A stretch of 64,000 nucleotides of DNA from Haliotis rubra (lineage: Eukaryota), in the NCBI RefSeq assembly GCF_003918875.1, contig NW_025765203.1, positions 1,302,001 through 1,366,000 of the forward strand, written 5' to 3'. Below the pieces are notes generated by a model. The model was not told the DNA's origin. It did no database searches and saw nothing but the letters and a program-made list of their open reading frames with translations. Shown here in pieces: positions 25,101 to 52,351 of the stretch. Position 1 is the stretch's first letter; each line of letters opens with the position of its first letter. The position numbers and the translations under genes are program-made.

Positions 25101-28100
25101 AGCAAGAAAAAGGAAGGCTTCTGATGCTGAGGATTCTAGTGAAAATGGGCCCAAGAGGGGCGGGCGGCGCCGAAAGCGCCCCCCATCTTCTGATTCATTT
25201 AGTGATGACCTGTCAGAGTCTTCTGAAGACCTGGTGTTCGGGCCATCAGGTGAAGATGAGTTTCAGCAGGAGGAGCTTAACACTGATGACGAAGACTTCC
25301 TAACTCCCAAGGGCAGGAACTATCAGAGACAGATTGCCCGAGCAGGTATGCGAAGTAAAATAGTTTATGTTTAGACAGTGACACTTTTATAGATACCACA
25401 AACAGCCCTGAAGTTGAAGAAGGTCATCATGATATAGATGATTCTAATGTTGAAGGCTTTGGTAATAATGAGGGGGATTCAGTGAACCGGAAAGGAGGAA
25501 GAGGCATGAAAAGAACAGCTATCAAGGCACAAAGGAGCCTACTTAAAAAATAAAGTGTATTTACACACTGATAACACTTGTGTTGTGTGACGATCATTAA
25601 GATATATGTTTTTCTCTATTATCATGATTATTGTTCTGATAAGGTGTTTTATGATATGATGATTGGTCAGTTCAGAGTCTGTATGAAGACGAAGAGCTGT
25701 GAATATGTTAATCACAGTTCAGTGAAACTCCTGAGCAGTCTTGATAAAGACAAGGTCTCTCATGTGAAGATGGAGTGTTAAGCAAACTTAAGTCAGTGTC
25801 ATGGTTTCTAAATTCTTGCTATATGAAGCAGTATCAGATTCCTGTAACTCGAAAATGGACATGAATGAGCAGTTTTGCATGTAACATCCTTTTTTGTGAT
25901 TGGTTTCATTACTAAAGGGGCCTACAAATTTACTCCCAGTTAATAGAATATTTCCTTCTTTAACTTGATTAGATGATCACCAAACATATGTCTGAAGTCA
26001 CATTCTTCTTCACCTAGAGATATTGCCCTTGTGAAGTAAAATATTCACTTACACACACACTCATCTTAAGAGTTTTATAGTCACATCGGCAGTATTTTGT
26101 CATTGGGACCACATTCTATTTGAAAGAAGAACTGCCATGTTTATTCTGATAAAGCTAGAGTGAGGTGAGAATGCCACCCACTTACAGCATGTATTGATTG
26201 TTTCCAGAGAAAGACAACTTCCAGCCCGGTGCAGATGATACTCCATGCACAAAGTGCAAAAGATATGACCATCCTGAATGGGTAAGTGGAATTTCGGATG
26301 CATTGGTTAATCCATGCTTTGTGGTATTGTTTTATGGACTTCTGGCAGATTCCCTGTCCTGATTTGCAGGCCCAATATTTTGCAGATATTTGTGATTAGA
26401 ACTATATAGAGGCTCTTGTCCCTTTTTTCCAGATTCTGCTCTGTGATAAGTGTGACAGTGGGTACCACACTGCCTGTCTCCGACCACCGATCATGATCAT
26501 TCCGGATGGAGACTGGTACTGTCCACCTTGTCAACATGTAAGTCACTCCAACAACTGCTTCTTGTTTTTGAAAGAGTCTACAAAACAGTTTGGATTCAGA
26601 AAGTTTGATTTTCATCTTAATATTGCAATAAGATTAATGCATGTTGGAAAGGGCATCAACATTTTAAGACTCTTTCAGTTTGACCAACAAAATCCTCAAA
26701 CAAAATTGCCGCCCAAAATGACGTTAAATGGTTTTGTCCATTTTTTCATTTGGAAATATTTGTTTGGAGTATTTCTGTTTGAGATCCACCCATCCCTATC
26801 CGTATCCATATCCCCATCCCCATCCCTTCCCCATCCACATCCCCACCCTACCCCCACCTACATCCCCACCCCATCCACATCCTCATGCAGATCCCGATCC
26901 CCATCCTCATCCTCATCCACATCCCCACCCATCCATTTCCACATTCACATCCACATCTTCATCATCCACATCCCCACCCATCCATTTCCACATTCACATC
27001 CTCATCCACATCATCATCCCCAACCACATCCACATCCTCATCCCCAACCACCATCCTCATCCACATCCACATCCCAAACCACATCCACCTCCACATCCCC
27101 AACCACATCCCCATCCCATCAACATCTCCACCCCCATCCAGGGGCGGTGGGGTAGCCTAGTGGTTAAAGCGTTGTCTCGTCACGCCGAAGACCCGGGTTC
27201 GATTCCCCACATGGGCACAATGTGTTAAGCCCATTTCTGGTGTCCCCAGCCGTGATATTGCTGGAATATTGCTAAAAGCGGCGTAAAACTAAACTCAGTC
27301 AGTCAGTCAGTCCACCCCCATCCCACTCTGTTCTAAACTTGATGCCAGTAGCCTGAACCTCTCTGCCACAATCTCTTTACTCAATCCCTACATATGGACA
27401 TTTAATAATATGAATGCAGGAGGCATGAAATGTACTGTAATAATGTATATCCCTGTTCCTTGTCAACATGTGTTTTTATGTGATCATGCTAAATTATGAA
27501 ATGTTTTTGTAACAGGTCATGCTGGTGCAGGTTCTACAAGAAAATCTTCTCAACCTAGATGTCTCTTTAAAAAAGAGGGAGCGGTTAGTCAGGAGGTAGG
27601 ATGTTTGGATTTTAAGCATCCAGTTTCATATAATCCTTGAACTTAGAGGTGTCCATAGTACCACCAAACCAATCCAAATGGTCTTGTGTTTGAATCCTAA
27701 GCTCGCATTTATTAAGATTTCCCGGTGCCATACATACCCATGCACCATGATAAGGATTCTGGGATATGACTCAAATACTTCATAAAACAATGTTAAACAG
27801 AATTTAATTGAAGGTTTTCAGAGAGCAATAATCAACATTGAATAAATTCCTGTGACATGCAAATACCTGTCATTATTTACACTGTGCAGTGTATATATAG
27901 TGTTACGTGCTGTTTACTTTTCAGAAAAGAACGTCTAGCCTTTGTAGGTATCAGCCTGGATAACATTCTAAAAGAGGTATGTATTCATTCAATGTGATTA
28001 TGTTTTGAATCTTGTGTATGCTTTTTGAGGATCTACTGGCTGATCACAGAAGAAAGTGCAGAGTTGCTTCCCTTTAGTGATCTTTTCTTGTAATAAGTGT

Positions 28101-31100
28101 TAAAAATCAGGTGAAGTGTTTAATTCAGACAAAGTAAGGTCTTTGCACAAATTGAGGATCTTCATCATGTTATGTGATGTGTAATTAATTCCAATCACCT
28201 GGACAGGACAAGAAGAGCAACATCCAGCTGCACAAGGAACGAGAGGAGAGGATGATAGCGATAATGACGAAGCGAATCATGAAGGAGGAGAGGGAAGTCC
28301 CTGATGAAGTGTACTCCAAGAGGTCCTGCCGATCTCGCCAGTCCATGAGCTACAGGTTCACCGAGTATGACAATCTCATCAACAGTGCTATTGGGGATGA
28401 CATCAAGGAGGAATCGTATGAAGATGACAGTTACTCAGGTAATGTACCCAGTTATCCTTCCATCAAAAACAAACAGTAAAACATCTGAAACTATTCTAGC
28501 TATACTTGTCACAGCCAATTGCAAGAGACTGTTATAGTTGCTGAAGCTTTGAATTTTTCATTTTTTACCTTGGTAAGGACAAGCAACTTTATCATTGCTA
28601 GAAATTCAGTCTCTTGTGGCAAAATTTGAAGATTCAGCAGCAGAATTTATGTATATTGGCCTCAGAGGTTGCTCATACTTTGAAGAACTGGTTACTCTTC
28701 AAGCCTCAATTCTTTCCAGCTGTGAGATGTAACATTGAATGCACATATTGTACTTAAGGCTTGCAGAATGTTAGTGACAATATTGATGATTTCTTTACTT
28801 ACACACAACACTGCTCTGATATGTACTGTGTGAAGACTGGTGAATGTAGGGATTTAGATTTTGGAGATGAATATGATGTTGATAGTATTGAAACGTGAAG
28901 ACTGTCATTAACTAAGCCTTTACCTGTACAGATGAAAGTGTCGGAGGGGGAGGCCGAGGTGGCAAGGACATGTCCAACATCACCGGTCGTCCTCCGCCTG
29001 TTGTCAACCGGGAAAAGAAAAGCCAGAAGGCCCGTCGGAGGCGCCGTCTCACTCAGCTGGACAGCGATGAAGAAGGGGATGAGAGTGATGAATACCAGGC
29101 TTCCAAGTTAGTAGCCTATGAGTTGTTAACAGTGATTTAACTGAAGGAATTGGAAGGTGGAATTGTGCTTCCAGTATTACTTGTATGAACCTGTACCGAT
29201 TTCAGGTTAGACCCATACTTATGCTGGTTGACACAGAAGATTTAATGGTCAAAAATTAGTTATGGTACTTTGATAATGTAGATCAATGCTCATATTAGGA
29301 GTATCATGTATATTTCTGTTCAAAATTAAATTAGATTCCTTCATGCAGCAGATTGTTCTATAAATTAGTTGCTTATTTCTTTATAAATTTGCAATAAAAC
29401 ACTTTGAAAAGCTGTGCCAAAGTCAGGCCAGATACTGTCATTAAACACAATCAGTGCAACAAATGGATTAGGTCAAGACATGGTTGAATATATATTGCAA
29501 GGAAAGGTTTTTACCCTTTCTGAGGGAAAGGTAACTTGACTTAGGATAACTCAAGCTTGTTTAGGTTAATTCAAGATTGTTAGCTTGAGAACCTGTGACG
29601 ATACAGGTTAGAATTGATCTTCACTAACCCATGCTTGTCGTAAGAGGCGACTAACGGGATCGGTTGGTTAGACTCGCTGGCTTGGTTGACACATGCCATC
29701 GGTTCCCAATTGCGTAGATCAGTGCTCATGCTGTTGATCACTGGATTGTCTGGTCCAGACTGGATTATTTACAGACCGCTTCCATGTAGCTGGAATGTTG
29801 CTGAGTGCGGCATAAAACTAAACTCTCACTCACTCGAGAACACACCTTAAAGAGAATCCACCTTTTGGAGTAAATGAAAAGTGGGCAATAATAAGACTTT
29901 GTTCATTGTTTTAATCCCAATATATATCCTACATCTCCATAAGAAGATTCTCTCTGGTTATACAGCCTGTATATATAGCCCGACCATATTTGTATTTCAG
30001 AGACTCTGCATCAGAAATGAGTTATGAGGAACCAGTAAGTGAGGTTGATTCCGAGGCGTCAGACTGGCAGCCACGCACAGGCCGTTTTGGTGTCAGGCAT
30101 ACCAGAGTACGCACCTCACGTGGAATCAGGAGGAAGTGGTCACGCTTTGATGATGATTTTGGTAAGAAGTTTCTATGTTTGTTTGGGACACCAAATCAAT
30201 GATCACAGGTAGGGATAACTCTTTCAGAATACAAGTGATAGTTTGTCATTGAGAAGGAAAGTTATTTTCAGTGTTTACTTCAGTTGTAAGAAGTGATCCC
30301 AAACAAATTGAGAATAGTATGGTCTGACTCATAATGGCAGTCACTGATCTGTCTAGCAGGTGTTCACTTATTTACAGGCTACTTTCATGGAATGTTTATC
30401 ACTCGGGTTGTGCAGAGTTATGTCCCTTCGGCATGATCTAAACCTACGATCATGGGTTCAAATCCTGGTTCACCCTGATTGTGTCTCATGATTTGTTAAC
30501 CCCATATGGATGCTGCTAGGTTTGACCAGTGAATGTCTAAGGACTGTCACTAGAGACTTTCCTCCTACATCAATCTGAGATGCTGCAGTTTAACTATATA
30601 CCATTCAAAGCAGCATTAAACAAACAGACTTTTGATAATACAAAAACTGAAATTAATCAAAATATTTCAGAGTAATAATCTTATGTAATTTAACTTTCAG
30701 TGGTTGATGATGACTACGATAGTGATGACAGTGCCAGTAACCGGAGGTCAACACGAGCCTCTTCAAAACGACGGGTCAACTATCAGGAATTCAATTCTGA
30801 TGAATCGGAAGCGGTAGAATCTCCAAACTCAGAATCTGATGACGATGTATCTGACAGAGATTTGTGTTCAGATGATTCTGATAGGAAGTCTAGAAAACCT
30901 GTGCGTCGTCGTGATCAGATCAGATGATAGCGCGAAGAAGAAGAAGAAAAGCAAAGAAAGAAAAAACACAGACAGTTGAGAAGAAGAAAATGAAGAAGAA
31001 GCGCCCAAAAATCAAAGACCGAAGTTCTGAATCAGAGAAAGATGTTTCAGATAGTGGAAAGAGCCAAGAGAGCGAGGAGGAAGAAGAAGAGGAGACAGAG

Positions 31101-32861
31101 AATGAAAAGAGTGAGGAAGAGTCATCAGAGGAAGAGAAAAAGAAGTCACAGCGACGACCACAAAGAAAGGCGTCGAACGTTGATTTCAAAAGTTTCCTCG
31201 CATCAGAGTCTGAAAGTGATGCAGAAAAAGAAAAAACAGTTGTTGTGAATACTAAGCGAAAGGTTCGTGGAGGGAAGAATATGGAGAATATTCTGAAAGC
31301 AGGTAGAGAGGATAGCTGTGATTTCTCCTCTTACTCTAAACCAGATGGTGAGTCTGATGATAGAACTGATGATGGTGAAAGGACTAATGATGGGGAAAGT
31401 AGTGGTAGAAAGTCCGACCAGGAAAAGATTGACACAGTGTCGGAAGCCTCCAAAGATTCTCAAAGTGCACTGGAGGTGAATGGACATGACCACCCTGCTG
31501 GGGATGGTAAACCAAATAAAGATGTACCCCCACCAGGATTCTCAAATGAAGGGGAAAAGTTTAGGTCTCATGGTAGTGAACCGTTTCCTCACCAGGGTCC
31601 CCGAAACTTTCAGTATCCGTATGGTGCTCATCAGAAACAGTATATGCATCCTCAGTATGGTCCAATGTCTCAAGGTCTTCCTCCCCACTCACAAATGAGT
31701 TCCCCACCCCATGGGTCCCCTCATCACCCGCAGGGGACGCCGCCCCACCCCCAGGGCACCCCTCCACACGGGACGTCCCCTCATCATCCTTCCAGTGCAT
31801 CTCCCCACCATCCACCCTCTTTATCTCCACACCATGCTCCTATTGCTTCTCCTCATCAACCTCATGGCACCCCACCTCATCCTCATGGAATGCCTCAGCA
31901 CAAGATGGGACCACCACCTGTTCCACAAGGTCAGCCATACCCCCAGGGGCCACCCCTTCCCCACCACATGGGACCCCCAGTTCCTGGCATGCCATTTCGG
32001 CCACCTCACCCAGGGTACCAACAAGGCCCACCCCATCATGGTGGACCACCTCCCCACTCTCATCCACCTGGAGGACCACCTCCCCATTCCCATCCACCTG
32101 GAGGACCACCTTCCCACTCTCATCCACCGGGAGGACCACCTCCCCACTCTCACCCAGCAGGAGGACCACCTCCCCACTCTCATCCAGCAGGAGGACCACC
32201 TCCCCACTCCCACCCAGCAGGAGGACCACCTCCCCACCCTCATCCCACAGGGGGGCCACAGTCCCACCCTCATCCTGCAGGAGGACCATCACCCCACCCC
32301 CATCCTGGGGGAGGACCACCACGTCCACACCAGTCAGGGGGACCAATTCCATCCCATCCAGGGCCACCACACCCCAGAGGTATGCACCCTCATCCAGGAC
32401 CACCAATTCCACATGGCCCACAAAAAACATCACGGCCCACCTCACCCTCATGGTCCACCCCCAAGAGGTATTCCTACTTATGGCCCTTACCCCCATTATG
32501 GAGGCCCCCCTGGGTCCTTCCCACCAAATCAACCCCCTCCAGTGAGACAACACCTTCCACCCACCTCCCAGAGTAACGCCGGTCCACAGGTACCCCATCC
32601 ACCACCTTCATCAACTTCGTCTAGTGGCAGTAGTGGTTTCATGATGGACAATCTGCTACGAGACAATCGCCAGTACCCTGAAGAGAGACAGTACCCAGAG
32701 GAACAGCCTGCTCGCTTTCCTGAGGAACGCGATACGAAGAGGAACGTCATTTCTCAGAAGAGGAAGAACAACAGCAAGGAGGCGAGGAAGATGATCTTGA
32801 AGATGTGTCCGATATTGTGCACTACGTTATGAATGATGAATACTTCAAACAACATACATAG
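7200..32861 (+). CDS. RSF1: Remodeling and spacing factor 1 (ISWI partner; N-terminal DDT/WHIM region, acidic region, PHD finger, Pro/His-rich C-terminus), 16 coding exons
   Basis: Phase-consistent GT-AG exons: 7200-7344, 11158-11252, 12119-12211, 12666-12794, 19484-19560, 20499-20572, 21499-24371, 25015-25345, 26208-26281, 26433-26537, 27516-27595, 27925-27976, 28207-28438, 28932-29106, 30001-30161, 30701-32861. RSF1-like motifs: [105 protein letters not shown], and C-terminal [15 protein letters not shown]. About 8 frameshifts occur in the two large low-complexity exons. Confidence 0.95.
8983..10666. mobile_element. Unclassified non-autonomous TIR DNA element in RSF1 intron 1 (host of a nested hAT MITE)
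   Basis: Left CAGTAGAGGACGTAACGTGTACGCAAGATG vs reverse complement of right end CAGTCAGAGACATAACGTGTACACGAGACG. The interior is richer in CpG than the flanking intron. No clear TSD. Confidence 0.6.
10177..10621. mobile_element. hAT-type MITE with 8-bp TSD
   Basis: Ends TAGGGCTGTAA / TTACAGCCTTA. Perfect 8-bp TSD GTGTACAC at 10169-10176 and 10622-10629, with subterminal CGAATA repeats. Confidence 0.85.
11927..12093 (+). mobile_element. tRNA-derived SINE family B
   Basis: A box TAGCCTAATGG, B box GGTTCGATTCC, body GAAGCCCATTTCTGGTGTCCCC, (ACTC)n tail. Confidence 0.88.
12893..13263 (+). mobile_element. SINE-like family A copy with internal ~111-bp triplication
   Basis: Unit GACAGGGTGGTCAGTCTCACTGAG...CAGACTCGATTAT begins at 12916, 13026 and 13137. 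Confidence 0.85.
13653..15182 (+). pseudogene. DIRS gag-like ORF1 (fragmented)
   Basis: Begins [33 protein letters not shown] (DIRS gag-type Cys/His finger), followed by Ser/Arg-rich low-complexity ORF pieces broken by stops and frameshifts. Confidence 0.65.
16370..17450 (+). pseudogene. DIRS RT C-terminus / RNase H / N6-adenine methyltransferase region (frameshifted)
   Basis: [13 protein letters not shown] (RT end). [31 protein letters not shown] and [13 protein letters not shown] (RNase H). [23 protein letters not shown] and AWFPDL (MT domain). Confidence 0.88.
17546..18600 (+). pseudogene. DIRS tyrosine recombinase (frameshifted at both ends)
   Basis: [55 protein letters not shown], and shifted-frame VFANHYLRD containing the catalytic Tyr. 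Confidence 0.9.
19081..19165. repeat. DIRS internal complementary region (ICR)
   Basis: The first half (TAAGCAAAAGATCATGAGTCAGGATAAGGAAAAATA) complements the start of the left ITR. The second half (TGTAATTTTTTAGTAAAATTGATATTTTATACTTATCCTGACTCATGAC) complements the right-end extension. Confidence 0.92.
19703..20045 (+). mobile_element. Two adjacent tRNA-derived SINE family B copies (19703-19874, 19881-20045)
   Basis: Both carry TAGTGGTTAAAGC..CGTCACGCTGAAGACCCGGGTTCGA heads and the shared tail. Confidence 0.88.
20657..20920 (+). mobile_element. Degenerate SINE family B copy interrupted by (CTCA)n microsatellite
   Basis: Head and body at 20657-20758, microsatellite, then CTGGAATATTGCTAAAGCGATGTAAACCC tail. 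Confidence 0.75.
26785..27140. repeat. (CCACAT/CCCCAT/CCTCAT)n hexanucleotide microsatellite in RSF1 intron 10
   Basis: Degenerate 6-bp periodicity. It explains the Pro/His ORFs at 26493-27228. Confidence 0.9.
27141..27312 (+). mobile_element. tRNA(Asp-like)-derived SINE family B, near-consensus copy
   Basis: GGGGCGGTGGGGTAGCCTAGTGGTTAAAGCG..CGTCACGCCGAAGACCCGGGTTCGATTCCCC head resembles tRNA-Asp anticodon/T arms. Tail is (CAGT)n. Confidence 0.9.
29591..29834 (+). mobile_element. SINE-like family A, full-length copy
   Basis: Same head and body as the other family A copies; here the tail is the ACTC type, as in family B. Confidence 0.88.
32040..32330 (+). repeat. Coding 30-bp tandem repeat ([12 protein letters not shown] x ~9) in RSF1 last exon
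   Basis: GGAGGACCACCTCCCCACTCTCATCCACCT-like units translated in the RSF1 frame. Confidence 0.9.
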
Positions 32862-42400: not shown

Positions 42401-43479
42401 GTTAGAAATTGTGAACAATGGGAATGACAAGTGTTTATGGATGATCAACTTCTTATTGCTGTATACTAATTCACCACTTCATGCCTAAAAACGGTATAAG
42501 TATCTACACCGAAACGTCGCTATTGCACAATAAAGAAGCTGATCATCCATACAGACTTGTCATTCCTATGTGTACACCTATCGTTATGTATATAGAAGAA
42601 CAGCGTCAGTGTGACTGAGCACATGACATGTCACGCACGCAGAGCATGAACATGCGTGTGTTCTGTTTCTACTGTAAAATACCGATTTCACGAGATCGTT
42701 TCAAACATTTGGGGTTTTTCAAATCTAGAATGGTTTTAGTTGAATATCGATTCTTCACATTGCAGTCTGGTAGTAAAATCTCAATATGAATAACTAATAA
42801 CTAAATTTGCGCGATTGGTAAATATTAATTCCACACTCTATTACTTACATCATATGATATCAGCTGAAATCACACATTCGATTTTGTATAACCCAAAACA
42901 AAGAAATATAAAACCATTACTAGTATATCGATTTGGCATATCTTTGGCAAAGTGATGGCAAGTTTTTCACTAATTTTAATACATTATTTCAGTGTAGATA
43001 TTTCTAAATATTAACGAATTATTTTCAATTGTCATATTTTAAAAACTAAATGATAAACAAACTTAATCATGTAATTGTATAAAAAAGCATGTTTAACATC
43101 ACAAATTCAAATAATTAGGGGAATTGTTCCTCACACGTATACCATATACACAGTGTCCATTAAAAACAATAATAAATTTCATTATAGATAAGTTACATTT
43201 TCATCATGATTCCATAAACATACTGCACACAGAATACAGGTCTTGGTCGTTGAAAAGTTGGTATGCTCCAAGGGAGGTAACCGCGGTGTGCTGAACACAT
43301 CGCTGCGCGAGTCGCGCTCAAAATAAGGCTGTCGAGATGGTATTTGACAAAATCGTAAACATGTTCCCCTTTCAACAATCACAAGGCATCACATGTCCAA
43401 ATTATGTAACTTTTGAAGACGATTTTTGAACACATTCTCAAATATTCGTGATGCATATATCTTCGTGACACAGACCTGG

Positions 43480-43544
43480 CCCACTTACCCGGTCACGTGG
43501 TACGTGCAACGAAAGGACGCCATTTTCCAGCAGAAACTGTGAAT
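43480..43544 (+). promoter_or_regulatory. Candidate promoter/5'UTR of the pogo-derived gene
   Basis: CpG-rich patch with E-box GTCACGTGG (43492-43500) and YY1-like CGCCATTTT immediately upstream of ATGAGAAAGAAAAAG|GTAAAG. Confidence 0.45.
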
Positions 43545-46500
43545 ATGAGAAAGAAAAAGGTAAAGTATGATCCAGCTTTGGTTATCTACTGCATGAAGCA
43601 ATGCCCATACTGTATTTTGTTATCAACCTTACCCATCGCCCTACTTGCAGCAGCATTCTAAATACTATCTCTCCTAGAGCATACATCCGTTACGTTTTGT
43701 TAATATTGATTGGAGTGGGTAGAGTTATGTCAAGACAGTAATCATAACAGTATATCGTTTCCTTTTGAACCATGATCTTTAAACGCCAAGCTCTTAATTG
43801 TAAGCACTCTCAAGTAGCGTTACCAAGAACTTGAAAACATTCGAGGACCAATTAAATTAGAAAATCAAAAGTGCCAGTAAAATTGATTTGCTATTTGAAT
43901 AGTCTCTGTATTGAAACATGCCTATTTCTCTTTTCAAAATATATGTTACATTTCTTAGCCTGATAGGGGCGGGGGTAGCCTTGTGGTTAAAGTGTTCGCT
44001 CGTCACGCCGAAGACTCGGGTTCGATTCCCCACATGGGTACAATGTAGAATAGAATAGAATAATACTTTAATGCCTTTCAGGAATTTGTGTTACATCAGC
44101 AGAGTTACTGACACATCAGAGAGATACCAATATATTTACATAAATTCATTGATTTAGGTATCTTCACATTTGTTTAAGAGAGATATGGTACTTGGAATAA
44201 AGGATGTACGGGCTCTCTTAGTTTTCACAATTGGAACTTTGTAGCGGCGGCCTGAAGGGAGGAGGTTGTATTCCGAATTTAAGTAGTGAGTACGGTCAGA
44301 TATAATTTTGACAGCTTGATTCACGATTTGCCGCTCATATATTGATGATAAACATTCAAATCTGACTCCAGCGATTTTTCTTGCAGTGTTAACAATTTTG
44401 TGTATTTTAGATTTGAGATGAACTGAGAGAGACCCGTACCAACAATGGAAGGAAAATGTTAAAATAGTCTCAAATGAAGCCCATTTCTGGTGTCCCCCGC
44501 CGTGCTATTGCTTGAATATTGCTAAAAGCGGCGTATAACCATACTCACTCAGTCTTATTATAATTAGCTTGATAAAATACAAACGTTGTATATTCCACGT
44601 TTTGTATATGCATATCCTAAACAAATCTGATTTACTACCACTACATTTCTGTCTGCTCACCCACAAACTATGCATCTTCTTTCACGCTTGTTTATGACAC
44701 AAGTGACGCTTGGAAGTGGGATCGCACCCAAAACTTGGGTTTCGTCGGCAGTAAATCTTAAAGAATCTTTAAAGTTAAGGAGAGTGAGTGAGTGAGTTAA
44801 GATTTACGCCGCACTCAGCAATATTCCAGTTATATGGCGGCGGTCTGTAAATAATCGAGCCTGGACCAGACAATCCAGTGATCAACAGCATGAGCATCGA
44901 TCTGCGCAATTGGGAACCGATGATATGTGCCAACGAGCCTGACCACCCGATCCCGTTAGTCGCCTAAAACGAATAGGTGGCACCTCTGGTCACTGTCAAG
45001 GTCATTAATGGAGTAAACAAGGTGTGTATCCTTCGAAGTTTTACATTCTAATTTCCCATCATGTTTGAATACGGAAAGTATACATATGCTGAAAGCATAA
45101 CGCATTAAATATGGACGTTTTGGGCTATAGTAGTTAGTTTCTAAGTAGTGTCACGTACCTTAGTTCTGCGTCACAGACAGCTTGAACGTTTAGGGCATGG
45201 AAACCCTTTCTGCACACGTAAACAGCTTCTTCGTCATCGCTGGGTCGCATGATAGGGATAAGAGTTCCATCGATACACCCAAGCACCTTTGGAAATCTAG
45301 CAATGTTATAGAAGGATTCCTTGGTGGCTCGTTGGTCGGATGCTGCCTTTGGGAATGATATTTGTTTCATAGTTGACAATAGCATCGTTTGTGCGGGTAA
45401 ATACCCGTGACACAGTGGACTGGGATACCCCATGCAAGTCCGCTAACTCAGAGAAAAACGATCCCTTACCATAATATCTGAGGGCAATTAAAACCTGTGT
45501 TTCCGGCGACAATGCATGAGAACGCTCGGTTTGGAAAGCAAGATGTGGTGATAGTGGGTTTACAAGCTCAAAAATGGCATGACGTGGTAGACGATATCGC
45601 CGGACTATGCTGTCATCATCCAGCGTATCGAGAACCCGAGTTCGGTCCCGAAATACCCTTGGTCGTGATGGTTTTGACTCGTTTTCAACTACGCCGAGGA
45701 GAAAATATGCAGCCATCTTAATTCTCAAGTTACGACAGAAATGTTTGATTTACGATAGGCGCTGGCCGTTCTTAAATTTTCTCTTAACTTTACGAGATGT
45801 TTTCACTAAGATAGCTTTGTGGATCGCTTAAGATTTCTGTCTTAAAGTTACGATAGGTTTACGATGTTCTTAGCGCTACGAACGCTTTGTGGATCGGGCC
45901 CCTGACCCGTTAGTCGCCCCTTATGACAAGCATGGGTTACTGAAGGTTCATTCTAACCCGGACCTTCACGGGTAACGAAAGAAGCGAGTAATACCGAGGT
46001 GATGGGAGTCTTCCACGTCTACTGCCCTGCTGCAGCCGGCAAGCACGGGTATGGTGCTGGCAAACAGTGAAACATAATCAGGGGCGCTTGGGACGAACCG
46101 GGATTCGAACCTACAATTGTAGAATTCTGGCGTAATCTACGGACTTAACTCTGCATACACGACTGGGCTACCCGCCGTTTAATGTCATTGAAGCGCATTT
46201 AACTGTCCAAACCATGCGCTGTCTCTTTTACTAGCTCAGATAAGTGAATGAGTATGGTTTTTCGCCGCTTTTAGAACTATACGACACTTCCTCAGATAAT
46301 AAGATGCAACGAGATTATAGAATCCCTTTAACACAAAACATTCATAAGAATTATGTCTAAAATGTCATCCATTCGCAATTCCAATATTCACGAAAATACA
46401 GATCATTTTCTTGCGTTCTTGACAATTTTTTCAGTTATGAATATTTCACTGAAAATTAACATATTTTAGCTGATGACCCGCCGTCTTATACACTGCTGCC

Positions 46501-49261
46501 TTATGTTTCTGTGAAAATGTTTTTGATCGAAAATTGAAAGAACTGTTGTTCAATCCGATATATAACTCACTCATTCCTTCCACGGTTTGTGAATGTTTCA
46601 GTAAAATTTATTCGTGCAATGAAGAATGGGTTAAGACATACATTTGCAACCACATGACCTCTACCATAGTTAAATGTTGTAAATTTGAAACAGAAGAAAA
46701 GGAAAATGTATTGGTTTTCAAATATAAAATGTATGTCATACCACCATTATTATTCGAATATATTTTTCATTTTAAAAGTTTAAATTCAAGTTCTATTTTT
46801 AAAAACAGAACCACGTAGAAGAATTATTTCAGAGCCAACTAAGAGTCAGTACATTTCATTTGTGTTATAGATATTTTCAATTAGAACTCACAAAAATGAT
46901 GAAGTCAGCTGAGAGTTGATCGTATAGTTTCTTGTCCCCTCTGTTTCTATTCTTGTTATACCTCTGGAACCAGAGGTACAGATAAGCTGCGTATCTGCGT
47001 AAATTACGCAAATATTTATATGAAAACTCAATTCCTTTTAAGTCTATTACGTACTGGTACGCTTGAAGTTTTGTAAATACTCAATAAGTTTGATCTTACA
47101 TGCGTACACACATAAATGTCACATTTTAGCTTGCGTACCGGTGGTTAGATAAAATAACTGAGGTATATTGAGAGGTTCTATTTCAACTTGGCAACTAGCA
47201 GTCTTTCTTATCGTTTCTCATATTACAGATCAAATATGAATAATAAACACGTATACCAACATTTAAACTTTATTATATTTTCACAATTAATGGAAAATGA
47301 CAAAATACCAAATTGAGTTGGAAGGAGGTGGGTACAATATATTTGGTTACTCAAGGGAAACTTAGGATACCCAATTAAGATGAACACAAGCGAGTACATA
47401 ACTCAATGACTCAAAAAGTTATCTGTAGCTCTGTCTGGAACCACAATAGCGTGATTGCAAATATGTATTTTATGTACTTTTATATGTTAAGAAAGTCACA
47501 TATATGTATATTTTTTGTTAATCACAGAAGCCCACCAGATCCAAGTCCAAGGGGTATCTACAATACTCCAACTTGTCACTACGAGAAGCATACAACGCCG
47601 TAGTCGGGAAGAAGATGTCCATGTACCAGGCGTCGAAACAGTTCCACGTGCCCTACATGACCCTGCACGACCGGGTGAAGGGCAAGATAGCCATGGACAC
47701 GCCCATGGGACGCCGAGCCATGCTGACGGTTGACCAAGAGGAGAAGCTCGTGGAATACTTCAAACATCTCTTTAACATCGGGTATGGCTACAGCAAAAAC
47801 GAATTCCTGCAGATTGTCACAGACCATGCAGTGCATTGTGGGAGCAGGAAGAAGAAAGGGAAAGTGAAGGTCGGAAAGATTTGGTACTATAGCTTCTTGA
47901 AGCGTCACCCGGATGTAATATCTGTAAGGCCTCATCAGCGGCCGTCATGTGCTTCAAAAAGTGCAATAAGTAAATATTACGATGAACTGGAACATTTCCT
48001 GAAGAAACATGGTCTTGTGAACAAGCAGCATGCCACTTTCTGCATGGACAAAGTTGCCATAGCTTGTGAGGAAATTCGTGACAAGCAAAAGGGAGAAAAC
48101 TCTGAGGAGGAGTCGGAATCTGCTACTTCTATGGTGAACTCGATGGTTGTTGTTATAGCGGCAGGCAACGCTGCAGGGGATCAGTTACCTCCCTTTTTTG
48201 TATTCCCTGGGGAGACGAAGCTTCCTAAGGTAACAGACACGACACCGGGGACGTCAGGGTGCGTCTCATCAGTCAACTGGGTTGATGGTGACGTTTTAAA
48301 GAAATACCTGTTCGAACACTTTTTGCCTTTGGCTCGGAACAGCAGTACTGATGATTCTCTGGTGTTGCTGTACGATGGCCACAAGTTCCCCTTGTTCCCA
48401 GGACTAATTGACTGGGCCCAGGATAAGAAGCTATATCTGTTCCCGCTGCCACCTCACTGCAGCTGTGTCCAGAAAAACCCGTTGTCCATTTTGTCTGATT
48501 TCGATGACATTTACACACAGGAACTTCAGTCTTACCTTAGAAGAGACAGAGTCCAAGACATTGACATCTCAAAGAACACTACCTGTCAAATTTCATGCCA
48601 GACTTATTTGAAAATTGTATTACCGGAAGAGTTAAAAACACTTTTCCTCAAAGCTGGCGTCATCCCACTCGACCCTCTATCCATGCCCTGGCCCGTCCAT
48701 AAACCTCTGAAGCTGGATAGGACAAACGTGAAATCCCGAGTTCTGACAGACCAGTCCAGTGATGATTCTGACTCCAGTGAAGACGAAGATGATTCCACAC
48801 CTGACATTAAATCTAAACCAAAGAGGAAGATTCTGGCAAGAAACAGATCAAAGAAACGCCAAAGTGATGAAAATTACAGCAACACAGACACAAAGCCCAA
48901 GAGGGTGAAGACGACCCAGATGTATGCCTCAGACTCGTCCGCGGGCTGTGTTGAGAAGGAGGAGGAGCAGGCCCAGGATGGAAGAGGAAGCTCAGGCTCA
49001 GACTATGCGTATGATAGTGAGGCCAGCAGTGGGGCAGGGCTGCTGGTGTTTGACGAGGATGACCAGAAGTGTTGTGTGTGTGGCAAGCTGGAGCCTCCCG
49101 GGCTTGCAGGGGAGGTCAGTATCGTGATCGTGGAGTGGGTCCAGTGTGATACCTGCTCACACTGGACGCATCTCCGGTTCTGCACCAAGGTCGGGGTAGT
49201 GGACAGTGAAGAGGAGTTTAAATGTCCACATTGTGCTCCGCCAAGGAGGGGAGTTGTGTAG
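43545..49261 (+). CDS. pogo/CENP-B-family transposase-derived protein (HTH_psq, CENP-B HTH, degenerate DDE_1, C-terminal PHD finger), about 582 aa, 2 exons
   Basis: Uninterrupted exon 47528-49261 follows acceptor TTTTTTGTTAATCACAG. It encodes ASKQFHVPYMTLHDRVKG (psq), WYYSFLKRHP (CENP-B), GNAAGDQLPPFFVFPG / LLYDGH / LPPH (DDE_1) and CCVC..WVQCDTCSHWTHLRFC..FKCPHC (PHD). Inferred first exon is 43545-43559 (MRKKK, phase 0). The main exon is certain; exon 1 is less so. Confidence 0.85.
43966..44552 (+). mobile_element. SINE family B split into 43966-44045 and 44475-44552 by a LINE insertion
   Basis: The 5' half ends GGGTACAATG and the 3' half resumes TGAAGCCCATTTCTGG; these are contiguous in intact copies. 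Confidence 0.88.
44046..44474 (-). mobile_element. 5'-truncated Rex1/Babar-type LINE 3' end
   Basis: Minus-strand ILTFSFHCWYGSL..KIVNTARKIAG..YNLLPSGRRYK..TKRARTSFIPSTISLLNK is the Rex-Babar ORF C-terminus, followed by a (TTCTA)n tail. Confidence 0.82.
44782..45973 (-). mobile_element. SINE-like family A split into 45906-45973 (head) and 44782-44964 (body/tail) by a Harbinger-containing insertion
   Basis: The two halves are collinear with intact copies. CCCGTTAGTCGCC is duplicated at 44952-44964 and 45906-45918. Confidence 0.85.
44965..45901 (-). mobile_element. Harbinger (PIF/HARBI1-like) transposon, 5' fragment with first transposase exon (45716-45159, one frameshift)
   Basis: TIR GGGCCCGATCCACAAAGCGTTCGTAGCGCTAAGA. 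Translation RPRVFRDR..RRYRLPR..ALSPETQVLIALRYYGKG..GVSQSTVSR / FPKVLGCIDGTLIPI..YVCRKGFHALNVQAVCDA is followed by a GT donor; the 3' part is missing. Confidence 0.9.
46000..46157 (-). mobile_element. Degenerate tRNA-derived SINE (third family)
   Basis: Minus strand TAGCCCAGTCG (A-box-like) and GGTTCGAATCCC (B box). GCCAGCACCATACC is shared with an old repeat at ~36325. Confidence 0.45.
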
Positions 49262-49736
49262 CCGAGGAAGGCAAATATCTGTGCTTCACTCACCAATGAC
49301 TGATAGGGACTGCAACATTTTCGTTCCGGTAGAGCTGTTTTTAAATTAAAAAAAGGGAAAGAAGTTTCTTTCTGTTACCAATGCGAAAGTTTGTTTTGCC
49401 TGAAAAGGGGTTGCATCGTCTTTCATTTTCATGAGGTCAAAGCTCTTCCAGTGTGGATCTGTTGGAATTGTTTACGAATGGGGAACATTTCCCATGGACT
49501 TAATGTGCTCTTTCCTGGGATAATTCTTCTTTTGTTCTTAATTATTGGTTCACGAAGCAAACGTACGAATTAGTACAAACCCTTGCATACACATTGAGAA
49601 GATATGTGCTGAATTCTTGAAATTTATACATCTGTCTGTGTTATTGCAACTGCATCAGTACTACCAAGCTATACACCTCTGCGGGAAGATCCGATCACAC
49701 CTCCACGTATGTTGTGGCTTTGGGTTAACTTTCTAA

Positions 49737-50048
49737 GGGACCGTTCATAATTTATGGCTAGGGGTGGTGGTGATGATTTTTATGGAGAAGCATGTTCAAT
49801 GTGAATGAACCCGCTAAAATTTATGTACAAAATAAGTGACTCCCCCTTGCATGTCATGTACAAAATCAATTACCACCCCTCCCCTTCCCATAATTTCTAA
49901 GCATAATTTTAAACATATTTTGATGTACAAAATTGCTGACCCCCTAGTTCGTGTGTACAAAATTGCTTAACCCCCGCTCCCCAGAACAAAATGGATGGCC
50001 CCTTAAAAATCATCATCACCCCCCTAACCATAAATTATGAACGGTCCC
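49737..50048. mobile_element. PIF/Harbinger-type MITE with TAA TSD
   Basis: TIRs GGGACCGTTCATAATTTATGG / CCATAAATTATGAACGGTCCC with TAA on both sides. Internal TGTACAAAAT repeats. Confidence 0.88.
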
Positions 50049-50839
50049 TAATACGCATGCATGTATGGAGCATTAAAACAACTTCCAAAAGTAGATAACA
50101 TAAAGTTTATAATGTTGTGGAAATTTCATTCGCCCTGTCGTTTAAATTGCCTATGAGGTTCACATTAGGATGAAGGTGCACGTCAAGATGAAGATACACA
50201 CTGAGATAAAGGTACACATTAGGAGGATTGTACACATTGTGGACTCCTGTTTGTGAGATCTTGCAATAAACCACTGAACAGCAACATACGTCTTGCTCAT
50301 ATGTAACGGACAGTTGATACATTGCCTAGTATTGAAACTAGTTCCTGCCAGTCTAAGTAAACTTAATACTGAGTCTAAGTTTATTTAGACCGGAGTTCCT
50401 CTGTGACAAATAAAAATCATTTCCGTTTCCGGAGATTGTGTCTAATGGCCCGGATGTACATGTATCCCAATACTAGTCGCAGTATTACAGCTGTGTAATG
50501 ATATTCTGTAATTAATCGAGCCAGCACCAGACAATCCAGTGATCGATACAATGAGCAACATCCGGATGACCCGCAACCATCCTGACACCCGGTGTCTTTG
50601 GTTGCCCACCCCTTTACGATAGCTGTGGTAATTCCACATGGATTAGGGTCAGGTCCAGCGAATTGGTCGGTAACGTTTTTGGTCGCTGAAGGTTTCAATC
50701 AGTTACATGCAGCAGAGATACAGCTTGACCACTGCTGACTGCAATATACAGCCCTTGGCGTGTACCGTGCACGTTCATCATCTCCGGATAAGTCCGATAT
50801 GGTCACTCGCCTTTGAGAAGTTGCAAAGCCATGCATATA

Positions 50840-52351
50840 TACTGAGTCAAAAAAGAAACTTCACATTCTTTCTTCAGGGCACTATAAAAGAACATGAGAT
50901 GGTAAGATGGTTAAATTGTTATTATTTCATTGCTGAGATCTGTGTGATGTACTCGATACACTGCCAGTGCCATAATCAGTTCCTTTAGGCTACACCGCCG
51001 TTCCAAAACATGGGTATACAGAATGTCAAGTCACAAGAATAAAAATGCGAAATTTCCCAGTTCACTGTCGTGTATGGCCGCCCCGCGCATTCACCACTGC
51101 CAAACACCGTCTCCTCATCGACTGCTTGATGCTTGTGAACACGTGGTTGGGGATTCTGCGCCATTGCTCTTGCAAGGCAGCGCCAAGTTCCTGCAAATTC
51201 TGAGGTTGGTTCCTAAGACCACGAAGCCTTCTCCCAAGTGCATCCCAAACGTGCTCTATTGGATTAAAGTCAGGGGACCTCGATGGCCAGTCCATGACAT
51301 TGATTCCAGCGTTTTGAAGGACATTTCGTGTCAACATCGCGGTATGCGGCCGAGCATTATCATGCTGGAACTGTAGACCTGGGCCATGAGCCGCCATGAA
51401 AGGAACGAGTTCAGGGGTGAGCACCTGGTCGCGGTAAGCAGCAGCTGTGAGGTTTCCACGGATGACCAGAAGTCGGGAACGGTTGTTCCCACACCATGCA
51501 ATGCAACTTCCGCCCCCGAATCTGTCGACTTCCTGTACACAACATTGGGCATACCGTTCACGACGTCGTCTCCAGACTCTATGCCTGCCGTCCGCGAATC
51601 TGAGGGTAAACCTGGATTCATCGCTAAAGACGACTCGATTCCTGTCTCTCTGGGTCCATCGTTGGGCCCACAGCAGAGGTTGACGTTGATGAAACGGCGT
51701 CAATATTGGCCCACGATATGGACGTCGAGAATGGAGATTGGCAGCCCGCAGCCGATTACGAATGGTCTGTGAGGTCAGTCGACCTCTAAACATCTCAGCC
51801 CTGGTTCGTGTAGAACAGAAATCTGTCACGTAGGTGACGTAAGACGATTTGACGGTCTTCTGCTCGTGACGTCACACGTGGACGACCCGACCTTGGGCGA
51901 TCAGAAGTAGTGCCAGTTTGTTGTAGACGACCTCGCAAGTCATACACAGTACGACGGCTGCATCCCATTGCTCTTGCGACGTCAATAACTGATCTTCCCG
52001 CTTGCAGCATGCCAACGGCACGTTCACGTTGCACATTTGACAATCGTGGCACTTTAAGTACCGTTGGAACTGTGGTTTAAAAGTGTTTTTTCAATTCTTG
52101 AGGCCAATGCAAACACGTGCATATGAAGAAAACTTCGATGCGAAGATCACGTGATCGACTGCACGTGCAAAACCTGATTTGGCACTAACGTCATTTGCAC
52201 GACGAATGGATGGGTTTGAGTGGGTTTTGCTAACGATTTTCTTGAGTCGAAAGATAGGGATCCCATTTCGGATACATAGATGTATCATCAGAGAAAAATT
52301 ATTCATTATTTTTCAAATTACATTTTGTGAAGGTTTTATTTTGACTCAGTA
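50840..52351 (-). mobile_element. Tc1-family DNA transposon, full length (1512 bp)
   Basis: TIRs TACTGAGTCAAAAAAGAAACTTCACA / TGTGAAGGTTTTATTTTGACTCAGTA with a TA TSD on both sides. Confidence 0.95.
51062..52052 (-). pseudogene. Tc1 transposase (DD34E), start codon GTG and frameshift at ~51815
   Basis: Paired-like HTH, DRPRSGRPRVT, FSDESRF, QHDNARPH, SPDFNPIEHVW; 34 residues between the second D and the E. Confidence 0.93.

Follow-up and report, generated by a model that had tools for sequence, protein, structure and literature searches.

Is the long reading frame with a pogo-type transposase and a C-terminal PHD finger that stands in this stretch of the Haliotis rubra genome a mobile element or a host gene, and where did its promoter and first exon come from? 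The window, that is, the whole stretch of DNA analysed, comprises 64,000 nucleotides (nt) of contig NW_025765203.1 (positions 1,302,001 to 1,366,000 of assembly GCF_003918875.1), and the gene in question occupies positions 43545-49261 of its forward strand. An earlier note on the same DNA had proposed a domesticated pogo transposase spliced to a host-like promoter exon. The first half of this proposal is well supported by the data presented here, and the second half is not. Very probably, this is a host gene derived from a complete transposon of the pogo superfamily, from a DD35D lineage that bears a PHD, and the element was immobilised upstream of a GFO_IDH_MocA dehydrogenase gene in an ancestor of abalones and peltospirid snails. 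The coordinates of all the features are collected in Table 1. The query for all the searches and folds was exon 2 alone, plus database proteins.

The gene is single-copy, syntenic and under strong purifying selection in both snail lineages. In a six-frame search of the 1.378-Gb genome, a single match of 100% was found, and the next one was 34% identical and belonged to a set of at least 89 pogo-PHD pieces. The closest database proteins are those of abalones: the orthologues of H. cracherodii, H. rufescens and H. asinina are 92-95% identical, and in these three genomes, as in the window, the gene lies 5' of the GFO_IDH_MocA gene on the same strand. A scan around the open reading frame (ORF) detected only short, chance-level inverted pairs, none of them convincingly bracketing the gene, in such a way that the absence of evident terminal inverted repeats (TIRs) reported before was confirmed. 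A putative right-end relic, TCACGAA after the stop codon, is present in the window and in H. asinina only and is not conserved.

The ratios of nonsynonymous to synonymous substitutions (dN/dS, or omega) were calculated by the Nei-Gojobori method and ranged from 0.069 to 0.097 in all ten pairs, with dS values of 0.27 against H. asinina and 0.46-0.61 against the North Pacific species. Fisher's test of selection, applied to one pair, gave p=2e-58. By regions, omega was 0.05-0.07 in the part encoding the helix-turn-helix (HTH) domains, 0.03-0.05 in the RNase-H core, 0.13-0.39 in the linker and 0.02-0.06 in the PHD finger, supporting the former claim that the HTHs and the PHD ligands have been kept. 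Copy number, synteny with the dehydrogenase gene and dN/dS had all been named as checks of domestication, and the three agree with it.

The protein retains the organisation of a whole transposase. An AlphaFold (AF2) model generated from a 12-sequence alignment, with a mean predicted local distance difference test score (pLDDT) of 66, was confident for the helical domains at residues 15-50 (the psq HTH, pLDDT 77-93) and 68-126 and for an alpha/beta core at residues 170-376, followed by a disordered stretch at 390-511 and then by a small C-terminal zinc domain. When the N-terminal two-thirds were compared by Foldseek, the best matches were the Mos1 transpososome (E=4e-6) and then the catalytic domains of Sleeping Beauty and Metnase, with a probability of 1.0. 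The Pfam match of the second DNA-binding domain to HTH_Tnp_Tc5 is weak (E=0.083), and the relatives bear PF03221. PF03184 is also present in those relatives that are matched by the abalone protein at E values of 1e-70 and below. Within the linker, the columns of the motifs KPKRK and KPKRVK, which resemble nuclear localisation signals (NLS), are unchanged in Haliotis.

Alignment with the relatives showed that the first two catalytic Asp residues (D174 and D283) are retained and that the third one is a Ser (S320), so that the triad reads D-D-S instead of an intact DDD. The surrounding motifs are altered as well: DE(K/T)G at the first Asp has become DKVA, with a Lys beside the Asp, DGH(K/R)SH at the second one has become DGHKFP, and LQPLD at the third has become QKNxLS (QKNPLS in the window), where x is P, T, S or A among abalones. 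The catalytic erosion described in the earlier note (DKVA, KNPLS and the loss of the third Asp) is therefore real, and the structure prediction that it had recommended for the DDE site produced an RNase-H-like fold in which, by alignment, S320 takes the place of the third Asp. Because the DDD triad is broken, we consider the protein a derivative rather than an active member of the pogo group.

It could be argued that the protein has kept an enzymatic activity, as a nuclease or recombinase in which a shifted acidic residue, from a conserved motif F-D/E-D-x-Y located just after the lost Asp, stands in for the third Asp. Such an activity would be in line with the core having the lowest omega, with the invariance of D174 and D283, and with F325, D327 and Y329 being invariant across Haliotis and the two orthologues described below, those of Gigantopelta aegis and of a contig from ENA. 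However, QPLD is lost in every orthologue and the residues that replace it are variable, a Lys occupies the place of the Glu next to the first Asp, the histidine of DGHxSH is gone, and there is no TIR substrate at the locus, which makes a retained catalytic activity improbable.

The gene had been regarded as lineage-specific, a view that did not hold, as syntenic orthologues with the same derived states were found in Gigantopelta aegis and in a snail contig from ENA. The Gigantopelta gene (LOC121370490; P0002, 633 amino acids) encodes a protein 34% identical, and the second non-Haliotis orthologue (P0003) lies on an ENA snail-like contig (L018). The states DKV, H(K/R)F, loss of QPLD and VPYMTL in the HTH are common to Haliotis and both proteins. 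The combination of DKV, HKF, VPYMTL and a lost QPLD was absent from the other 150 best profile hits, among which there are several with decayed active sites (P0037, P0097, P0130, P0166 and a flatworm group). In this profile search, carried out against 1.84 billion representatives, the orthologue clusters scored 1167 and 941 bits and all the others 304 or less; the nearest non-orthologue proteins are transposon-like proteins from molluscs and other invertebrates.

The structure and surroundings of these two genes are similar to those in Haliotis. The Gigantopelta gene starts with MRKRK/GT (the slash marks the splice site), followed by a 390-nt intron and then by KPRK, and the micro-exon of the ENA contig reads MKKKK/GT. 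A GFO_IDH_MocA gene is located 3' of LOC121370490 on the same strand, and the downstream region of the ENA contig is collinear with the dehydrogenase exons of the window. The synteny in Gigantopelta rests on the gene call, and a tblastx comparison of the downstream region of the window with the Gigantopelta flank, which holds only around 2 kb of the dehydrogenase gene, yielded nothing. In a quick IQ-TREE analysis of 34 proteins, the four abalone proteins, P0002 and P0003 formed a clade with a value of 100 in the Shimodaira-Hasegawa-like approximate likelihood ratio test (SH-aLRT). The two neomphaline-type orthologues are 73% identical to each other, with a dN of 0.158 and a dS of around 1.65, the latter near saturation, and an omega of around 0.10. 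These comparisons indicate that the gene predates the split of abalones (Vetigastropoda) and peltospirid vent snails (Neomphaliones), which is placed in the Palaeozoic.

A group of flatworm proteins was also detected (P0017-P0023 and P0059, from the cestodes and trematodes Echinococcus, Hymenolepis, Schistocephalus, Anoplocephala and Calicophoron), most of them of 750-809 amino acids. They keep DE at the first Asp, have lost QPLD and show a partly degenerate PHD, and they form a tight clade with long branches, sister to the gastropod gene (SH-aLRT 95). This clade may represent a separate domestication in parasitic flatworms.

Regarding the structure of the gene, the open frame of exon 2 spans positions 47522-49261 of the + strand and, as noted before, it has no ATG of its own at the start and is preceded by a clean acceptor in frame (...aatcacAG/AAG, with the AG at 47526-27 and a polypyrimidine tract before it). 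Its earliest in-frame ATG is codon 30, within the psq HTH. The residues ahead of this codon build the first helix of the psq HTH in the AF2 model and include AYNAVV, unchanged even in the Gigantopelta orthologue. Since these conserved residues precede the first in-frame ATG, an upstream start is required. The micro-exon proposed for this role, ATG AGA AAG AAA AAG/GTAAAG, is in phase 0 with the exon 2 acceptor, and MRKKK followed by KPTRSK opens the RefSeq models of H. cracherodii (XP_071085812), H. rufescens (XP_046365308, LOC124141359) and H. asinina (XP_067670254). A RefSeq entry for the gene exists already, as an uncharacterised protein; the protein listed for the genome of the window (P0029, 548 amino acids) begins at an internal Met and therefore lacks the first HTH helix.

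Further support for the splicing came from four transcriptome-sized contig sets of around 50 Mb each, which carry the species label of the DNA runs and were aligned to positions 43420-49400 (5,981 letters). These transcriptome-like contigs, whose RNA nature is our guess, cover the region from 47526 to beyond 49400 at a depth of around 3, and their depth is zero at the unique parts of the intron (45020-45619 and 46420-46619), with values in the thousands over repeats only. In one contig of 160 nt (X3) the match starts at its 52nd letter, at position 47526, leaving 51 nt, and another contig of 238 nt (X4) stops matching at the acceptor, leaving 25 nt. The products 51 x 3.3/200 = 0.84 and 25 x 3.2/200 = 0.40 are exactly the depths of the bin 43420-43619. 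From this, we infer that the remainders of 51 and 25 nt correspond to the joint between exons 1 and 2, with a leader that reaches back to at least 43509. Thus, the spliced model of the earlier note is supported by the three RefSeq models and by this contig arithmetic.

Another contig (L016, Logan contig DRR299178, 2,256 nt) was considered as a spliced transcript and discarded, as it holds the intron up to the acceptor and is thus genomic or unspliced. A change of T to G at 47573, which alters a Leu codon, was present in two contigs (X3 and X4); other abalones have a Ser at this position, and the change is probably a polymorphism.

The origin of the upstream part of the gene was analysed by comparison within Haliotis, with the two distant orthologues, and with pogo-PHD elements of the same genome. 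The E-box CACGTG and the YY1-like motif GCCATTTT near the micro-exon are present where the earlier note had placed them, and further upstream there is a tandem pair TTCGTGA-N10-TTCGTGA with a period of 17 nt. In the Haliotis comparison the promoter is 90% identical, with invariant blocks, and both the E-box and GCCATTTT are unchanged in four species. The E-box is found 50 nt before the ATG in Gigantopelta and is missing from the ENA snail contig. The block TTCGTGATGCA-N6-TTCGTGA.AC is unchanged in the window, H. asinina, H. cracherodii, Gigantopelta and the ENA contig.

The H. rubra genome also contains a pogo-PHD family (L003:999-3703, L004:1003-3701 and L006, on C435, C2839 and C2114) whose copies are 98.5-99.2% identical over 2.7 kb, with sharp ends and intact frames of 595 codons, and which on these grounds looks like a recently mobile one. 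Its long exon is likewise devoid of an ATG before the HTH, and the copies bring an ATG micro-exon of their own and an intron of 295 nt. In L003, which shows a D-D-35-D catalytic spacing, a tandem pair (TTCGTTC and TTCGGTC, 17 nt apart) is located around 20 nt inside the left end, directly followed by GCCATTTT and, around 100 nt later, by a micro-exon, ATG CTT CGT GTC AAG TTC AGC AAG/GTAAAT (MLRVKFSK). The intron of L003 has 295 nt and contains CACGTG, its acceptor is one codon off the equivalent position in the gene, and an inverted copy of the 16-nt motif at the right end makes up a subterminal inverted pair. A similar arrangement was found in L002, from a different subfamily, with a 13-nt repeat of 17-nt period, then GCCATTTT, MLRVKLTN/GT and a CACGTG in the intron, and in L009, with a 10-nt repeat of 17-nt period and the micro-exon MLRVSSIC/GT. 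A micro-exon MRKKQ/GT followed by an intron starts the relatives LOC121373701 of Gigantopelta (L022) and LOC127877322 of Dreissena (L023), the latter with a CACGTG 51 nt before the ATG.

As mobile-looking relatives share the micro-exon, the intron position, the motifs and the 17-nt tandem pair, the promoter, exon 1 and intron most likely descend from the 5' end of the element, and the description of exon 1 as a host-like promoter exon had to be abandoned. That description amounts to an exon capture, in which a transposase ORF without a promoter landed downstream of a host promoter with its first exon and was spliced onto it, so that micro-exon and intron would be of host origin as well. A long intron of around 4 kb, generic promoter motifs (E-box and YY1-like) and the lack of any remaining TIR are what such a capture would leave, but the mobile-looking relatives have their own micro-exon with an ATG, their intron deviates by no more than one codon from the position in the gene, and they bear GCCATTTT, CACGTG and a 17-nt pair; MRKKQ/GT starts relatives in two other molluscs, and the orthologous intron of Gigantopelta has 390 nt, near the 295 nt of the transposable element (TE). 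We thus regard a capture as quite improbable.

The loci LOC121373701 and LOC127877322 have introns of 2-3 kb, and these two, together with P0130 of Mercenaria (LOC123547372), are single annotated pogo-PHD loci with partly decayed catalytic motifs. Each of them could represent either an old copy or another domestication.

The 3,968-nt intron of the gene has been enlarged through repeat insertions. The orthologous introns have 390 nt in Gigantopelta, 1,851 nt in H. asinina, 3,332 nt in H. cracherodii and 3,399 nt in H. rufescens. In nucleotide comparisons with H. asinina, exon 2 is 93.6% identical and the alignable intron 75-79%; the identity of the exon drops to 89.5% with the North Pacific species, whose intron is barely alignable. 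The broken PIF/Harbinger fragments (Table 1) fall in a part of the intron without counterpart in H. asinina, and high-copy repeats occupy positions 43820-45019, with contig depths in the thousands. Of the SINE, LINE and Harbinger insertions announced before, the Harbinger fragments and the presence of high-copy repeats are thus confirmed. Along the intron repeats at 43820-45019, 45820-46019 and 46820-47419, the summed depths in the transcriptome-like contigs range from around 60 to around 53,000, and these repeats would thus be highly repeated, transcribed elements. Many contigs skip around 430 nt between 44046 and 44475, and therefore one repeat is nested in another.

That the locus is just a non-functional old immobile copy that has stayed open by chance, as its RefSeq label of uncharacterised protein and its weak Pfam scores would allow, is hardly credible, given a 577-codon frame open at dS values of up to 0.61 with an omega of 0.07, a syntenic orthologue at 34% identity with an omega of 0.10 within its own lineage, a conserved promoter, and transcriptome-like contigs (of guessed RNA nature) over the gene.

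The C-terminal finger was studied in a family alignment of 40 members, in which the eight ligands (C515, C518, C540, C543, H548, C552, C566 and C569) and the two Trp show little or no variation. Comparison of the family profile with the sequences of the Protein Data Bank (PDB) retrieved KDM5B PHD3 (E=5e-5), followed by PHF23, PHF13, BYE1, KDM5A PHD3 and TAF3, and more weakly by EBS, BPTF, PHF2, DIDO1 and MLL5. In the alignment with KDM5B PHD3, VEWVQCDTCSHWTH is paired with VDWVQCDGSCNQWFH, and the two Trp line up with those of WVQCD and W.H. The core V(D/E)WVQCD..C..W.H, with both Trp kept, likewise aligns with KDM5A PHD3, PHF23, PHF13, TAF3, BPTF and BYE1. The abalone finger differs from these fingers in having His-x3-Cys instead of His-x2-Cys and an extra Cys before the first zinc knuckle (CCxC). 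Its AF2 model reached a pLDDT of 82, and the best 50 Foldseek matches of this 73-residue model were all PHD fingers, with weak E-values of 0.02 or higher.

Among the 179 proteins that were retrieved, 64 carry the finger, which occurs throughout this pogo lineage, and this distribution indicates that it came with the transposon lineage and is not a host addition. We take KDM5A/B PHD3, PHF23, PHF13, BYE1, TAF3 and further matched fingers to be readers of trimethylated lysine 4 of histone H3 (H3K4me3), and the two conserved Trp to correspond to the aromatic cage of KDM5A PHD3. Judging from these alignments, the abalone finger would read the histone H3 tail, most likely with H3K4me3 as its mark. 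Alternatively, it might bind DNA, by analogy with the cysteine-rich domain of piggyBac, which binds transposon-end DNA and not histones.

Taken as a whole, these features suggest a protein that would no longer cut or move DNA. The basic NLS-like linker would direct its import into the nucleus, the two HTH domains would bind a specific DNA sequence, and the PHD finger would contact H3 tails, most likely those with H3K4me3. The dead RNase-H core may be kept as a scaffold, or for binding nucleic acids or proteins. The tandem TTCGTGA pair is a candidate relic of the subterminal transposase-binding repeats of the ancestral transposon and could be a binding site of the protein itself. It is conceivable, although we hold it as doubtful, that this ancestral site has been retained from before the separation of the abalone and vent-snail lineages because the domesticated protein still binds to it, in which case the gene would encode an autoregulated, H3K4me3-guided factor. 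If this were true, the protein might also occupy the 17-nt-spaced repeats at the ends of the mobile-looking pogo-PHD transposons and restrain them, and the case would be one of whole-element domestication, with a protein and its cis site co-opted together.

Several observations weigh against the interpretation of the locus as a whole-transposon domestication, or against parts of it. The DDE_1 match has an E-value of 0.005 and 16.8 bits, under the curated cut-off of 22 bits, and the Pfam PHD match, over the last 76 residues, is also under its curated cut-off, in such a way that Pfam alone is insufficient to identify either the core or the finger. Omega is lowest in the core, a degree of constraint beyond what a passive scaffold would obviously require. 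The joint of exon 1 was deduced by contig arithmetic from runs whose RNA nature is a guess. The homology of the promoter with the transposon ends consists of a shared architecture and short motifs and not of alignable sequence, and GCCATTTT is absent in Gigantopelta. Finally, TTCGTGA-N10-TTCGTGA is not enriched genome-wide, with 17 hits versus 38 for the reversed control, and therefore nothing points to a large regulon based on precisely this site.

The loci with multiple hits of this tandem motif are 17-bp minisatellites or have no pogo ORF nearby. Two such minisatellites, made up of TTCGTGATATCCGTCAG and variants and unrelated to pogo, are located at C2156:1706226-1706266 and C2356:1451244-1451284.

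The abalone gene can be compared with the pogo-derived genes CENP-B, TIGD1-7, JRK/JRKL, POGZ and POGK (Gao et al. 2020, PMC7386202), as in all these cases a whole pogo transposase became a single-copy gene under purifying selection with its HTHs retained. POGZ and POGK come from the Passer family, of the DD35D type (PMC7386202), and the mobile relative L003 also has a spacing of 35 residues between the second and third Asp. The abalone gene presumably represents an independent event in gastropods. Whereas the extra domains of the vertebrate genes are host KRAB, ZNF or dimerisation modules, that of the abalone gene is a PHD already present in the transposon, which also appears to be the source of the promoter, first exon and intron of the gene. 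The word PHD has zero occurrences in two surveys of pogo elements (PMC7386202 and PMC7325037), and a survey of TE-derived transcription factors in molluscs mentions neither Haliotis nor PHD.

Other systems combine a DDE-fold transposase with a chromatin or zinc domain. RAG1/RAG2 is also a transposon-derived DDE-fold system with a PHD, that of RAG2, which reads H3K4me3 and thereby brings the DDE-fold protein to active chromatin (cf. PMC11844651); however, RAG derives from Transib/ProtoRAG, is catalytic and has its PHD on a separate subunit, whereas the abalone protein carries its PHD in cis and has a degenerate active site. In piggyBac/PiggyMac (PMC8086355), a C-terminal PHD-like zinc domain on a cut-and-paste transposase was likewise kept after domestication, but in another superfamily. 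SETMAR/Metnase, Mos1 and Sleeping Beauty are the closest solved folds for the HTH and core, at only around 10% sequence identity, and belong to the mariner/Tc1 families and not to pogo. SETMAR resembles the abalone gene as a domesticated transposase of the IS630-Tc1-mariner type joined to a chromatin domain, and differs in that its chromatin domain, a SET domain, is of host origin and was acquired through the fusion of exons.

It is known that new DNA-binding regulators can arise through the domestication of transposases. To our knowledge, the well-documented pogo domestications are nearly all from vertebrates, yeast or flies, and this gastropod case is both datable and syntenic. A living relative of the source element in the same genome reveals which parts were inherited (promoter motifs, micro-exon, intron position, NLS-like linker and PHD) and which were altered (catalytic motifs and intron size). 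A pogo lineage whose finger is similar to those of H3K4me3 readers suggests that the targeting of a cut-and-paste family may be guided by chromatin.

Table 1. Features of the pogo-PHD gene and its intron (positions in the window).
Feature	Position	Strand	Details
Tandem pair TTCGTGA-N10-TTCGTGA, 17-nt period	43445-43468	+	Copies at 43445 and 43462
E-box CACGTG	43494-43499	+	51 nt 5' of the ATG
YY1-like motif GCCATTTT	43519-43526	+	Inside the putatively transcribed 5' leader (contig pieces reach around 51 nt back from 43559)
Exon 1, coding part (micro-exon MRKKK)	43545-43559	+	Donor GT at 43560
Intron	43560-47527	+	3,968 nt
PIF/Harbinger transposase fragments, broken	45134-45728	-	HTH_Tnp_4 E=1.9e-7, DDE_Tnp_4 E=1.8e-6, two frames
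Exon 2	47528-49261	+	577 codons and stop, nearly all the coding sequence
psq-type HTH, first DNA-binding domain	47579-47689	+	Pfam PF05225 HTH_psq E=6.4e-7
Second helical DNA-binding domain, Tc5/CENP-B type	47729-47905	+	AF2 helices 68-126
RNase-H-like transposase core, catalytically degenerate	48035-48655	+	Foldseek and alignments
Catalytic position D174	48047-48049		
Catalytic position D283	48374-48376		
Catalytic position S320	48485-48487		
Disordered acidic and basic linker with KPKRK and KPKRVK (NLS-like)	48695-49060	+	pLDDT <35
PHD finger C4HC3, two conserved Trp at putative aromatic-cage positions	49061-49246	+	Pfam PHD E=0.0019

As to the neighbourhood of the gene in the window, the downstream gene is the GFO_IDH_MocA dehydrogenase, and between the two there is a Tc1/mariner remnant in two frames at 51062-52052 on the - strand (DDE_3 E=1.4e-11, HTH_Tnp_Tc3_2). 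A 29-nt inverted pair at 49736-50049, around 480 nt past the stop codon, was considered as the TIR of the gene and rejected, as it belongs to a separate insert similar to a miniature inverted-repeat transposable element (MITE), with arms that are 97% complementary. The upstream gene contains a PHD half-exon at 26440-26540 (+), which we take to resemble that of RSF1. Around 4 kb past it, at 30924-32576 (+), there is an ORF of 550 codons with an acidic and Ser-rich start and a second half rich in His and Pro.

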